A DNA stretch of 64,000 nt from Macrostomum lignano (GCA_002269645.1 NIVC01003143.1:53198-117197), one strand, 5' to 3'; shown: positions 7,525-13,500, counted from the first letter of the stretch. Notes: generated by a model from the letters alone, not told the origin. Numbers and translations are program-made.

Positions 7525-10500
7525 CTATGCAACTACAATTTCTGTTGCGGTACTTGAAATCCTGAAATGAAAAAACAATTTTATTCAATTTAAACAAAAT
7601 TTTTCGCAGTTATTTGATCATAAATCTTCTCACCTGAACTGCGAAAACGGCTTGAAATTGACAATCAGAATGAACTCAGCGAACCTCACCAGACAGAGGC
7701 CCTGGAAGTGACGGTCATTGGCGAGTAAATAACAAACAAACAAATAAACAAACAAACAAACAAACAAACAAACAAACAAACAAACAAACAAACAAACAAA
7801 CAAACAAACTAACTAACTAACTAACTAACTAACTAACTAACTAACTAACTAACTAACTAACTAACTAACTAACTAACTAACTAACTAACTAACTGACTAA
7901 CTAACTAACTAACTGACTAACTAACTAACTAACTAACTAACTAACTAACTAACTAACTAACTAACTAACTAACTAACTAACTAACTAACTAACTAACTAA
8001 CTAACTAACTAACTAACTAACTAATTAACTAACTAACTAACTAACTAACTAATTAACTAACTAACTGAACTAACTAACTGACTAACTAACTAACTAACTA
8101 ACTAACTAACTAACTAACTAACTAACTAACTAACTAACTAACTAACTAACTAACTAACTAACTAACTAACTAACTAACTAACTAACTAACTAACTAACTA
8201 ACTAACTAACTAACTAACTAAATAACTAACTAACTAACTAACTAACTGACTAACTAACTAACTAACTGACTGACTAACTAACTAACTAACTGAACTAACT
8301 AACTAACTGAACTAACTAACTAACTAACTAACTAACTAACTAACTAACTAACTAACTAACTGACTTACTAACTAACTAACTGACTGACTAAATAACTAAC
8401 TAACTGACTAACTAACTGACTAACTAACTAACTAACTGACTGACTAACTAACTAACTAACTGAACTAACTAACTAACTGAACTAACTAACTAACTAACTA
8501 ACTAACTAAATAACTAACTAACTAACTAACTAACTGACTAACTAACTAACTAACTGACTGACTAACTAACTAACTAACTAACTGAACTAACTAACTAACT
8601 GAACTAACTAACTAACTAACTAACTAACTAACTAACTAACTAACTAACTAACTAACTGACTTACTAACTAACTAACTAACTAACTAACTGACTGACTAAA
8701 TAACTTACGAACCCACCTTGTACAGGCATGAGGGCGCTGGCCCAAGCATGAAGCAGTCGGCCACAGCAGCCTGCCAGTACGCGGCCACGCCAGCTCGCCT
8801 CGACACCCGCGCAGCCAGCAGGAAGACAGGGACTTCCTTCTAGATTGAATTGGGCCCAAAAAAATTTGCGGTTAAATCTGCCTCACACTACTGGCCAGAC
8901 TCGTAAGTAGAGAGTATCGCACTTAATAAAAAAATGACAATAATCTCACTTTAGAACCGGTGGAATTTCTTGCAATTTCTAGGGTGCTTTGAAAATTGCT
9001 GAGGCAGCGACCTGACGGCGAGCTGTTGAGACTCTGCGCTCTGTCTAGCAGGGCTTGAAGCTCCCCGTCATAGTCCTTAGTGGATTGGCTGCAATGGAAA
9101 ATTGGATCGATTCAGAAACTTCTTTCTGCATCCGTGATTGACTAGATTAGCAATCCATCATTCTATTGTTGCATCTGTGATTGACTAGATTAGCAATCCA
9201 TTCTATTCTTACATCCGTGATTGGCTAGATTAGCAATCCATTCTATTGTTGCATCTGTGACTGACTAGATTAGCAATCCATTCTATTATTGCATCCGTGA
9301 TTGGCTAGATTAGCAATCCATCATTCTATTGTTGCATCTGTGATTGACTAGATTAGCAATCCATTCTATTCTTACATCCGTGATTGGCTAGATTAGCAAT
9401 CCATTCTATTGTTGCATCTGTGACTGACTAGATTAGCAATCCATTCTATTATTGCATCCGTGATTGGCTAGATTAGCAATCCATTCTATAATTGCATCCG
9501 TGATTGGCTAGATTAGCAATCTATTGCGTCCATGATTGACTAGATTAGCAATCCATTCTATTATTGCATCCGTGATTGGCTAGATTAGCAATCTATTGCG
9601 TCCATGATTGACTATATTAGCAATCCATTCTATTATTGCATCCGTGATTGGCTAGATTAGCAATCCATTCTATTATTGCATCCGTGATTGGCTAGATTAG
9701 CAATTCATATACTAAAAATGGGTTGTCTGTATGTGTGTGTGTGTGTGTCATCGGTTTTAGAAAAAACGGCTCAACCGTTTTTTGATTTTGAAAAAATTAC
9801 GAGCTAAAATCGATACTACTTACACGAGTAGTCTGTTGCAGGTGCCTCCGCAGTTCCCCTCCATGTAAGCCAGGTGTTGGGGACTTTTGCGCCGACTTAC
9901 GAGATGCTCAGCAGCCTGACTGAAAACAAAGACCCGGCTGAGCACGGGCTTCAGGCAGTAGCGATGCGGCCCCATGACGCTGGACAGCCACCGGGACAGA
10001 TCCACGGACTGCTAAGGTTTTGCGTACTTTCGATACATATCGGGGCAAGAAAAGTTATCATAATAACGAATCGTTTAAAGTCCAACAAACCTCCTCGGGC
10101 CACTGGGAAATCAGCTCGTCTTCCCATAGCTGCCGTTTGAAGGCCACCGCCTTCAGTGGCGCCGCCTGAGTCCGGTACAGCAGCGATGAGTTCGGCGAGG
10201 TGTGAACGAATGACTGTGGGCAGGGTGGCACAATACGAAAACTTTTATTTATAGACCGGCAAGAGAGACACTGAAATTGTTAAGTGAAATGACAAGACAG
10301 ATAGCGGAGTGACGAGGAAAACGGTAGAGTGATGAGAGAGACGGTAGAGTGCTGAGAGAGACGGTAGAGTGACGAGAGAGACGGTAGAGTGACGAGAGAG
10401 ACGGTAGAGTGACGAGAGAGACGGTAGAGTGACGAGAGAGACGGTAGAGTGACGAGAGAGACGGTAGAGTGACGAGAGAGACGGTAGAGTGACGAGAGAG

Positions 10501-13500
10501 ACGGTAGAGTGACGAGAGAGACGGTAGAGTGACGAGAGAGACGGTAGAGTGACGAGAGAGACGGTAGAGTGACGAGAGAGACGGTAGAGTGACGAGAGAG
10601 ACGGTAGAGTGACGAGAGAGACGGTAGAGTGACGAGAGAGAAGGTAGAGTGACGAGAGAGACGGTAGAGTGACGAGAGAGACGGTAGAGTGACGAGAGAG
10701 ACGGTAGAGTGACGAGAGAGACGGTAGAGTGACGAGAGAGACGGTAGAGTGACGAGAGAGAAGGTAGAGTGACGAGAGAGATTGCAAAGTGACGCAGCTC
10801 ATTCAGCAGCTCACCTGATCATTCCAGGCTCCGATGCAGAACAGATTTCTGTCTTGCTCAAACAGCGGCAAAGTTTGATTAAAAAAATCGATCAGGTCGG
10901 GGCTCGGGTCCACATCGTCCTCTAATAGAATCAGGTACTGCGCGCTCTGGGAGAGGCAAGTGGTGCGTTAAATGGGCGGATTTATTCATTTCAGGTTTGG
11001 GATTCGGTCAATTCAGGTTGGGATTCGGTCAATTCAGGTTGGGATTCGGTCAATTCAGGTTGGGATTCGGTCAATTCAGGTTGGGATTCGGTCAATTCAG
11101 GTTGGGATTCGGTCATGTCTGCAGCCTTCTCACCTGGAATTTCCTGCTGGATTCGGCCAGTGCCAGACGGTACAAACTGGAGCTGCCGGCGTCCCTCCAC
11201 CGAAGGCTGCGCTGCGAATGTCGGACCTGCAGCAGCTGGCAGACGAGACGCGGCTGCTCGAAGTAGCCGTGCAGGAGGGCCGTCGTCTGGGAGGCGTTGA
11301 GGCCGGGCAGCTGGAGAAGCGATGTCAGGGCTCTGGCGGGGTGAACAGGGAGATGTGCGGGCTTTTTTAGATGGCTGGAGGCTCTTTTCATTGACTCCAC
11401 AGTGCTCACACAGGGTGTACAGCGCCCTGACTCACTCATCGTCAGACATGTACACTCTCTGCACCTTGGGGGCTGCCCTCTTGGTCGCGAATCACATGTG
11501 GACGAGCCTGAACTCACGGAGGTTTTGGACAACCGAATGCACGCCTGCAGAGCATGCTATCAGACAGTGCTGTCACAGTTGAGCTCACCTGTACAGAAAC
11601 TGAGGACGATTCGAGCTCATAACGGTGATTGGCACAACGGCTGATGGCGAGGAGAACCAGTGAAGCTGGAGAGGTTGAGCAAAATTATTGGTAAGAATAT
11701 CGATTTTTAAGCAAGGACGACAAGTGACGCAAGTTAAGTAATTTTTTTAGTAGATATTTGCGACAATTAAATATCACAAACTTGCTACACTAAAGAGGGT
11801 CGCTTCTGGAGCAGGCGACTAGCGATTCGTCGTTTTAATCAGAAGGTCGCAGGTTCGAATCTCAAGCAGTGTCAAACTAATACATGCCACACACACAAAG
11901 ACAGAATTTGACATCCACTTATATCAAACAGCTAGTGCTCATGTCAAACCAGAGCTCCCGCATCTTGCTCACCGGACTCGGTGCAAAGCTGATGCGGCTG
12001 GGCTGGTCGCAGCTGCACACGTTGCTGAAGCCGTCCACCTGGCTGCAAAACTGTCGCCGCCTCGCCGTCTCCTCGCCGGGTGGCCAGAGTGGACAAATCG
12101 GTTCTGAGATTGTGGTCAAGAACCTGAATTAGCTTGGTTTGATTCACTATCTATTGTCGATTTTGTACTGAGAAAACTGTTTTTCGATACATATCGTGGA
12201 TTTGCCTTAGTCACAATGGATCGCCTCTCTCGGACACATTGAATCAATATTTATTACCTTCTTTCAGCGTCAATTTGACTGTCGCATGCAGCCTCAGTGG
12301 CTCCTCCGCCGAGCGCCGCTCTTCGCCGATTCTGCCAACTAGAATTTGACAATCATACTACTGATGAGCCGGTAAGTAGAAATAAGGAAATATTTTCGTC
12401 TATTTCACCTTTAGCAAATGCAATCAGAATCCATGCGTCGGACGGTTTCAGGGAAACGAACTCGCGACTTCCAAGCGATCGGAAGGCCCGCCGTGTGGAG
12501 ACGACAGCAGAGGCTCCGGTTGCTGCCGTTGCTGCAGAGTCGGGCTGCATCAGTTTTGGGATGATTTTAGCGTTAATAAAACATTCACAGACTGTCTCGC
12601 AACAAATAGACGCAATTCAGCACAACATACTACTCGCGTGAGCACCAGCAGCCGGCCGGCCGAGACCGAGGAGGCGATCGCTTCGGCCAGCTCCCAGCTT
12701 CCAGCAGGATGATGCCCCATCAAGGACGCCTGAGGGCCAGAAAGGTTTGCTTAAGCCGTCAACTTGAATGTCGCGTATGGTAAATGATATGACTTTATCA
12801 GAACAGCCTACTTACAGTAGCTTGATTAACGATGAACACGTGGTATCCGGGGCTTGTGTCGTTTATTAGCTGAAATTTGTTTAAAAATTGTCCAACTTTT
12901 TTAAATCTTTTGCATTTAAACAGCAAGCCTCAAATACCCACTCACCAACACGCCGTCAATGGCCAAGGCGGTGTTGCCGGAGCTGCACCAGGCCTCCAGG
13001 TCCACTGAGGGCCGGGCGCCGTCGCTGAAGCTGCCAAGCGAATCGTGCTGACGAATGCGGCGGTGGGGACCGGCGGCTGCGTCTGCGGGCCCGAGCTGCG
13101 GGACTGCAGGTGGGTGGAGTCTGTCTATCTATCTATCTATCTATCTATCTATCTATCTATCTATCTATCTATCTATCTATCTATCTATCTATCTATCTAT
13201 CTATCTATCTATCTATCTATCTATCTATCTATCTATCTATCTATCTATCTATCTATCTATCTATCTATCTATCTATCTATCTATCTATCTATCTATCTAT
13301 CTATCTATCTATCTATCTATCTATCTATCTATCTATCTATCTATCTATCTATCTATCTATCTATCTATCTATCTATCTATCTATCTATCTATCTATCTAT
13401 CTATCTATCTATCTATCTATCTATCTATCTATCTATCTATCTATCTATCTATCTATCTATCTATCTATCTATCTATCTATCTATCTATCTATCTATCTAT

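Follow-up and report, generated by a model that had tools for sequence, protein, structure and literature searches.

Can a glycosyltransferase lose most of its transfer site and still be kept by selection? The question is raised by a POMGnT1-like gene on the minus strand of a 64,000-nucleotide stretch of Macrostomum lignano DNA (GCA_002269645.1, NIVC01003143.1:53198-117197), which at its full length is called the window here. The interval 13103..7525 had been described, in an original prediction, as a POMGnT1 paralogue that looks like a pseudo-enzyme. The gene is real, conserved and selected, and its product has the fold and topology of POMGnT1. The resemblance to a pseudo-enzyme proved stronger than first claimed, since six of seven core residues of glycosyltransferase family GT13 are changed; one part of the description, an acidic metal motif said to be kept, is not fully conserved. 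We assign a probability of about 0.6 to the reading that the gene encodes a conserved GT13 pseudo-glycosyltransferase. Judged from the residues that it has kept and lost, the protein probably works non-catalytically.

Replacement of transfer-site and stem residues

In published accounts, D476 of POMGnT1 is catalytic and E393-D395 forms a modified DXD motif (PMC3133881); in the related enzyme GnT-I, the metal is bound by D213 alone, D291 serves as the base, a loop of residues 318-330 closes over the donor, and the nucleotide is held by a conserved Arg, His and Glu (PMC7014118); and R129, D179 and R207 in the POMGnT1 stem bind beta-linked N-acetylglucosamine (GlcNAc) (PMC9802357). Motifs of the window product were read by HMMER comparison with the human POMGnT1 sequence in the PDB and by MAFFT alignment with P0002, a 660-amino-acid POMGnT1 taken as mammalian because it is nearly identical to the human protein. 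The closest relative, BOX15_Mlig001922g5 of M. lignano (P0001, 655 amino acids), is about 47% identical to the window product over 96% of the length.

By these alignments, all five motif changes listed in the original prediction were read correctly. The exon at 9824..10008 carries the alpha-F helix with the xED motif, as judged from alignments and models. There WDWDMW has become VDLSRW (10005-9988): D474 is retained, W475 is replaced by Leu, and the general base D476 (D291 in GnT-I) is Ser in the window and Ala in P0001. In the same exon SYHFG reads VFVFS (9933-9919). The lid loop, H-F-G-x-x-G in canonical enzymes, reads VFVFSQAA, with H500, G502 and G505 lost, and a model of P0001 shows a long helix there with moderate confidence. 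The G-loop exon (10091..10213) has APLKAV (10162-10145) for MPGLGW, so that G450 is Ala, W451 is Val and a new Lys stands at 449; P-G-L-G-W is thus replaced by PLKAV. Across GT13 representatives, G450, W451 and G505 are conserved at 94%, 94% and 93%, respectively.

The nucleotide-binding residues D338, H371 and R311 are not preserved as a set. Two of them fall in the exon at 11134..11332, where D338 is His in the window (ALLHGYF, 11280-11260) and Arg in P0001, and H371 is Leu in both (SSLYRLA, 11181-11161 in the window). We take D338 and H371 to be uracil/ribose contacts by analogy to GnT-I, the role of D338 being transferred from GnT-I D144. R311 lies in the NRP motif of the exon at 11589..11665, which encodes the first strand of the GT-A domain; it is retained in the window and is Gln in P0001. 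The metal site fared differently. The exon at 10815..10946 encodes LEDD (10925-10908) and CIGAWNDQ, and E393 and D395 of canonical LEED (393-395) are retained both in the window and in P0001, which reads LEGD. A DXD-type motif with the metal ligand D395 is therefore present in the window, as had been stated, while its central residue varies between the two proteins.

In the stem, GRGIHV reads SPGYHV (12854-12837, in the exon at 12816..12869) and GWRDTW reads KPSDAW (12448-12431, in the exon at 12409..12544), which replaces R129 with Pro and R207 with Ser. P0001 has Gln at R129 and a residue other than Arg at R207. The GlcNAc-binding triad R129/D179/R207 is not present, D179 being aligned with an Asp in the window only. 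The earlier claim that the catalytic-base position and two stem arginines are lost was borne out, and the losses extend further, to D338, H371, G450/W451, W475 and H500/G502/G505.

The extent of the change was measured against 22 canonical POMGnT1 proteins, whose named members come from choanoflagellates, a filasterean, an ichthyosporean, a coral, a hemipteran insect and a mite, with the mammalian P0002 in addition. Among 69 columns that are invariant in this set, the window retains 36 and P0001 retains 35; 30 are lost in both. At 13 of these 30 the same new residue appears in the two proteins (Y275F, Y314F, H371L, S423G, G448L, L449K, G450A, W451V, W475L, E489Y, H500V, G502S and H608Y). Seven residues that are 80-98% conserved across GT13 representatives (D338, H371, D395, G450, W451, W475 and D476) were taken as the core of the family. 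All seven are retained by 74 of the 112 representatives with coverage; 26 miss one and 6 miss at least three. With the surviving Asp placed at D474, the window product and P0001 each retain one of the seven, D395. Since many of the replacements are hydrophobic and identical in P0001, these residues suggest a single remodelling of the pocket in a shared ancestor, after which it stayed fixed. The two proteins disagree at other altered sites, namely, D338 (His/Arg), D476 (Ser/Ala), R311 (Arg/Gln) and E394 (Asp/Gly), which argues against chemistry at these positions.

Whether the general base is missing depends on the register of the surviving Asp. In the HMMER alignment with PDB entry 5GGF, in an 11-sequence MAFFT alignment and in an L-INS-i alignment of the 22 canonical proteins, D-x-x-x-W aligns without gaps and the flatworm Asp falls under D474, a residue that is itself invariant in canonical enzymes. 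In an AlphaFold model of a canonical enzyme the helix begins at W475, is capped by D474 and has W478 as its fourth residue; in the AlphaFold model of P0001 it begins at L469, is capped by D468 and has W472 in fourth place. The agreement in register between alignments and models indicates that the general base is missing. Placement of the VDLS Asp at the base position, which the original prediction had named as the result that would overturn it, is thus opposed by the POMGnT1-level alignments and by the helix register. Three points weigh on the other side. A MAFFT alignment of 150 GT13 representatives dissents and puts the VDLS Asp under D476, by way of opened gaps; the spacing from W-P to this Asp equals that in GnT-I; and the alignments supplied to AlphaFold were already in the D474 register, so that the models are supportive and not fully independent.

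Loss of motif residues was also seen elsewhere in GT13. P0128, P0142, P0113 and P0102, which form one clade, have W-[QRH]-[GE]-W where W-D-x-W is expected, and three of the four also lack the EDD motif (IEDRIN, LEPYLE); P0102 reads LEEQFE. In another representative, P0032, the residues W451, W475 and D476 are all missing. Such degeneration within GT13 may have had more than one origin.

Descent, selection and the fate of the enzyme

The original prediction held that the spliced product keeps the full POMGnT1 layout, and this was confirmed at the levels of sequence, modelled fold and gene. In phmmer, the window product matched human POMGnT1 (5GGF) at a level well above chance, with an E value of 2e-52 over query residues 28-451, from the stem into the catalytic domain; the same comparison gave 3e-14 for rabbit GnT-I. 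Identity to human POMGnT1 is about 25%. The Pfam GNT-I domain (PF03071) scored 61.8 bits in the window product against a cut-off of 25.4, the Pfam ILEI stem domain was not detected in it at the sequence level, and its C-terminal extension aligned to P0002 in MAFFT. The structural evidence comes from a model of P0001 and not of the window protein itself: built on a 79-sequence alignment, this AlphaFold model is confident, with a mean predicted local distance difference test score (pLDDT) of 86 and a predicted template modelling score (pTM) of 0.83. Foldseek matched it to full-length human POMGnT1 (5GGF; E value of 8e-48, template modelling [TM] score of 0.85 over 561 columns), to the isolated stem domain (5GGJ; TM score of 0.80-0.82), to FAM3 proteins and to GnT-I (TM score of 0.75). 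Once the membrane-anchor exon described below is added, the product has its domains in the order of POMGnT1, namely, a membrane anchor, a FAM3/ILEI-like stem, a Cys-rich linker, a GT-A domain and a C-terminal extension.

P0001, whose annotation goes no further than a hypothetical protein of the GNT-I family, was the sole close relative returned by the searches. Its gene (L001; M. lignano NIVC01000172.1) has about 17 exons over 20 kb. Of the 14 junctions within the interval, 12 have an intron at the same position in both genes. The two others are the junction after window residue 148, which is unmapped in the P0001 gene, and the last one, at residue 567. The window gene and BOX15_Mlig001922g5 are orthologues. 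A comparison of the window with the P0001 locus, where the neighbours encode Snf7, KH and amino-acid permease proteins, found nothing in common except the gene.

P0001 also served as the query of an exhaustive HMMER scan of 1.8 billion representative proteins, which returned 1,294 relatives. Apart from two M. lignano fragments, P0010 and P0151, the nearest were canonical POMGnT1 proteins at 33% identity. P0010 is a fragment of the same gene, 95% identical over residues 134-221, and P0151 is another, 54% identical and apparently mis-spliced; they suggest extra copies or homeologues of the degenerate gene in the partly duplicated M. lignano genome. In a neighbour-joining tree, the window product and P0001 branched from within the canonical POMGnT1 clade, and the length of their branch was several times that of any other. 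This position indicates descent from POMGnT1 proper and not from another GT13 subfamily. Canonical POMGnT1 proteins with MPGLGW, WDWDMW and an intact stem domain were also found in Pigoraptor, the choanoflagellates Barroeca and Salpingoeca, and the ichthyosporean Sphaerothecum (P0009, P0018, P0024 and P0041). Their occurrence in unicellular relatives of animals shows that the enzyme is older than animals.

The tree bears on whether the gene is a paralogue at all. It could instead be the sole, very fast-evolving POMGnT1 of its lineage, in which synthesis of the core M1 O-mannosyl glycan was given up and the protein was kept. This view concerns origin, so that it is compatible with an active or an inactive protein. 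The place of the pair within the canonical clade fits it, as does the exhaustive scan, in which only canonical enzymes of other phyla (the best at 33%) accompanied the two M. lignano fragments. No canonical flatworm POMGnT1 was present among the 30 representatives whose names were looked up, the flatworm genomes themselves not having been searched; these 30 came from choanoflagellates, a filasterean, an ichthyosporean, a coral, an oyster, brine shrimp, mites, insects and a vertebrate entry or were nameless. However, the word-index search returned only P0001 from each of three queries (the window protein, P0001 and a mixed alignment), even when canonical sequences were supplied, so that absence means little; the absence derives from protein searches and not from a flatworm genome search; and the placement of a long branch in a distance tree is unreliable. 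We regard a sole orthologue as quite possible, though somewhat less likely than not.

Selection was estimated from 556 aligned codons of the window gene and P0001. The nonsynonymous rate (dN) was 0.51 and the synonymous rate (dS) was 1.5-1.75, which gives a dN/dS of about 0.3, a rough value because dS is near saturation. The gene is under purifying selection, as had been argued from its open frame; P0001 adds an intact frame and matching introns. Constraint is unevenly spread. The DXD exon is the most constrained, with 70% identity to P0001 and a dN/dS of 0.10, and the exon at 8950..9088, in the C-terminal alpha/beta extension, is the least conserved, with 26% identity and a dN/dS of about 0.95.

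These figures also bear on a trivial explanation, namely, that the gene is a pseudogene in decay with a frame left open by chance, or that the odd motifs come from a wrong exon model. A first exon was not found, and dN/dS is near 1 in two C-terminal exons, as such an explanation would allow. However, neither a disrupted frame nor neutral evolution is seen: there are 0 internal stops in 1,881 nucleotides across 16 GT-AG exons, and the overall dN/dS of 0.3 is below the value near 1 that the original prediction had associated with a young pseudogene. P0001 has the same exon structure, an intact frame of 655 amino acids and 47% identity, and every motif lies within an exon and recurs in P0001. An intact frame and common intron positions in two genes this diverged rule out a pseudogene, and an artefact of either kind is highly improbable. 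The combination found, catalytic residues lost (six of the core seven) under purifying selection (dN/dS of about 0.3), is the one expected of a pseudo-glycosyltransferase.

The same data leave one functional rival, in which the protein is still an active glycosyltransferase but its pocket has been rebuilt for a different donor or acceptor or for another mechanism. In that case the base would be the Asp equivalent to D474 or some other residue, and the new G-loop Lys (PLKAV) would help to hold the diphosphate. We consider an active enzyme unlikely. It is the main rival, for which E393 and D395, the tightly constrained DXD exon, the conserved new Lys and the helix-cap Asp leave room, and several of these points also weigh against a non-catalytic protein. 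Retention of E393 and D395 in the most constrained exon fits continued binding of a nucleotide sugar or metal. The remodelled pocket residues, including the 13 derived ones identical in the window and P0001, are conserved and not drifting, which would fit a new catalytic specificity as well. The conserved Asp that precedes the alpha-F helix lies two positions away from the lost base, for which it might in principle substitute, and GT-A enzymes are able to compensate for a missing xED Asp, with families that swap the xED base or the metal for other residues (PMC7185993). The near saturation of dS, the use of a model of the orthologue and the dissenting wide alignment count on the same side. Against a rebuilt enzyme, the six altered core residues include the presumed uracil/ribose positions and the G-loop glycine; the positions of D338, D476, R311 and E394 differ between the window and P0001, which would be unexpected if they took part in chemistry; and the lid loop is replaced by what is predicted to be a helix.

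A conserved pseudo-glycosyltransferase remains the reading that we prefer. The protein would be a type II membrane protein of the secretory pathway and a descendant of POMGnT1 (CAZy GT13) with its whole architecture retained. Its site for transfer from UDP-GlcNAc with Mn2+ has been dismantled by loss of the base D476, its partner W475, G450/W451, D338, H371 and H500/G502/G505, and only E393 and the metal ligand D395 remain of it. This pattern of replacement was presumably fixed before the lineages of the window gene and the M. lignano gene P0001 parted. Canonical inverting synthesis of GlcNAc-beta1,2-Man would no longer be possible, and the protein may have been retained for a non-catalytic role in the Golgi, most plausibly, by analogy, as the partner or scaffold of another glycosylation enzyme. 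Any scaffold role would bypass the known GlcNAc-binding site, since the arginines of the stem have been lost as well.

A stronger version combines this reading with sole orthology. Macrostomids would be without any canonical POMGnT1, and this protein, as the direct orthologue, would have given up both GlcNAc transfer and the binding of GlcNAc by its stem and yet have remained under selection. We think this improbable. If true, it would be a natural separation-of-function experiment, in which the selectable job of POMGnT1 in the lineage is non-catalytic, for example, the organization of other enzymes of the O-mannose pathway through surfaces beyond the known sugar sites.

Gene model and surroundings

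The gene model was rebuilt exon by exon from open segments, splice signals and homology. The interval 13103..7525 contains 15 exons on the minus strand, with GT..AG at all borders and all junctions in phase; they comprise 578 codons and end with a TAG stop at 7527-7525. Sixteen in-phase exons had been predicted within this interval. The frame is open as predicted, the count there is 15, and both ends of the interval are exact for its first and last exons. The exon that begins at 13103 opens with two bases of a split codon, so the interval holds only part of the protein. A further exon of 47 codons and one base, encoding a type II membrane anchor, was identified on the same strand at 29069..29210 by a hydrophobicity scan and by reading of the sequence, with an AG acceptor and a GTGAGG donor. 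It lies 16 kb upstream of 13103, joins in phase (G+TC = Val) and resembles the anchor of P0001, LIVLTAAALLVSNLLLNLL. Together the 16 exons give an open frame of 1,881 nucleotides and 626 amino acids whose single stop is terminal. A search of 29211-36800 for a Met-bearing first exon gave no convincing candidate.

The remaining exons, all on the minus strand, complete the domains described above. The exon at 12946..13103, supported by tblastn with P0001 and bounded by an intron position in common with the P0001 gene, encodes a spacer and the start of the FAM3/ILEI-like stem domain. Stem sequence continues in 12634..12729 (tblastn with P0001) and ends in 12258..12338. The exon at 11973..12103 includes PICPLW and encodes the Cys-rich linker, in which the alignments show that the Cys residues matching C254, C269, C279 and C281 are retained. 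The C-terminal extension occupies, in addition to 8950..9088, the exon at 8717..8839, where by alignment the canonical IWDLDVRG motif is gone, and that at 7634..7701 (tblastn with P0001); the last exon, 7525..7561, includes the stop. Two candidate features were rejected. Mini-exons at 11544-11518 and 11464-11436 would cause a one-base frame clash, and the 5GGF alignment joins 11665-11589 directly to 11332-11134. A resemblance of 9896-9824 to YFHEAYFKKH in another frame would require a 17-nucleotide intron.

The window is rich in repeats, with GC-rich exons set among introns full of micro- and minisatellites. Tandem arrays were located at 7747-8705, 9127-9708, 10307-10781, 10986-11115, 13120-13547, 14387-15180, 15655-16486, 18526-19252, 19327-19645 and 20120-20868, and nearly every longer intron has its own type of array: (AACT)n, a 40-mer, a 20-mer, a 21-mer, (TCTA)n, (TGTC)n, a 12-mer or a 13-mer. 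The 16-kb intron between the anchor exon and the interval (13104..29068) consists mostly of tandem repeats, namely, (TCTA)n, (TGTC)n and 12- and 13-nucleotide arrays; its counterpart in the P0001 gene is 7 kb. A repeat scan of this intron reported only the 12-nucleotide array, repeatedly. A second copy of the block around 14.3-16.5 kb stands at about 19.3-20.9 kb, and the translated peptides on its flanks are the same, which indicates a segmental duplication of about 4.4 kb within the intron. In the intron 11972-11666, plus-strand sequence at 11790-11870 resembles the 3' half of a transfer RNA (tRNA) (GGTCGCAGGTTCGAATCT), and near 14010 there is a similar GGTTCAATTCC element. ARAGORN found no tRNA gene in the whole window, so these stretches are probably fragments of tRNA-derived short interspersed nuclear elements.

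Three other coding regions were noted. The next gene upstream, on the same strand as the POMGnT1-like gene, is a single-exon open reading frame of 394 amino acids at 36807-37991 with a Dcp1 decapping domain (Pfam E value of 8e-30), an mRNA-decapping C-terminus and long poly-Gln runs. A multi-exon gene of the Piwi/Argonaute family lies on the minus strand at 43115-47926; it has an RG-rich N-terminus, a PAZ domain (E value of 2e-25) and Piwi pieces (E value of 2.5e-27), and one of its introns contains a tandem array of the 21-nucleotide type at about 43600-44340. On the plus strand, 55049-60492 is the coding region of a BEL/Pao-type long terminal repeat retrotransposon, with a DUF1759 gag-like domain, Peptidase_A17, a weak reverse transcriptase match and an integrase, in frames that appear largely open.

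Comparison with known systems

The gene is a degenerate variant within a known family, and its interest would be higher if it proved to be the sole POMGnT1 of its lineage. Few pseudo-glycosyltransferases are known, and those that are, COSMC and similar proteins, have proved to be important regulators; we know of none described in GT13. In humans, a second, non-catalytic function of POMGnT1 in assembly of the dystroglycan glycan that binds laminin is under debate. A lineage that has long kept a POMGnT1-like protein without its chemistry would give natural access to that function. RNA interference is established in M. lignano, a flatworm that lends itself to experiment, so that a loss-of-function phenotype and a search for partners are within reach. 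A non-catalytic role of the kind proposed here has precedents, one of which is POMGnT1 itself, as an "enzymatic chaperone" of fukutin (PMC8478517).

The other precedent is COSMC (C1GALT1C1), a pseudo-glycosyltransferase of the GT31 fold that has lost its motifs and is the chaperone of T-synthase (PMC7185993). As in COSMC, a glycosyltransferase fold has been retained under selection after loss of catalytic residues. COSMC is a proven paralogue with a known client and acts as partner or chaperone of an active enzyme, whereas the window protein is a putative paralogue with a proposed role as partner. With rabbit/human GnT-I (MGAT1; PDB 1FO8) it has in common the GT-A catalytic domain and the same E-D-D type of motif. 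In contrast, GnT-I is without a stem domain, and its H190, W290 and D291 are without counterparts in the window protein. P0001 has the same derived motifs, PLKAV, DLxxW, FVxS and LYR, and differs in reading LEGD for LEDD and NQP for NRP and in having a longer C-terminal tail. Finally, the window protein resembles human POMGnT1 (5GGF/5GGG/5GGI) in domain order and fold and has kept E393, D395, D401, D416, R442, W466, D474, W478, R488, R497 and the linker Cys residues, but D476, W475, G450/W451, D338, H371, H500/G502/G505, R129/R207 and the C-terminal WDLD motif have all been replaced.

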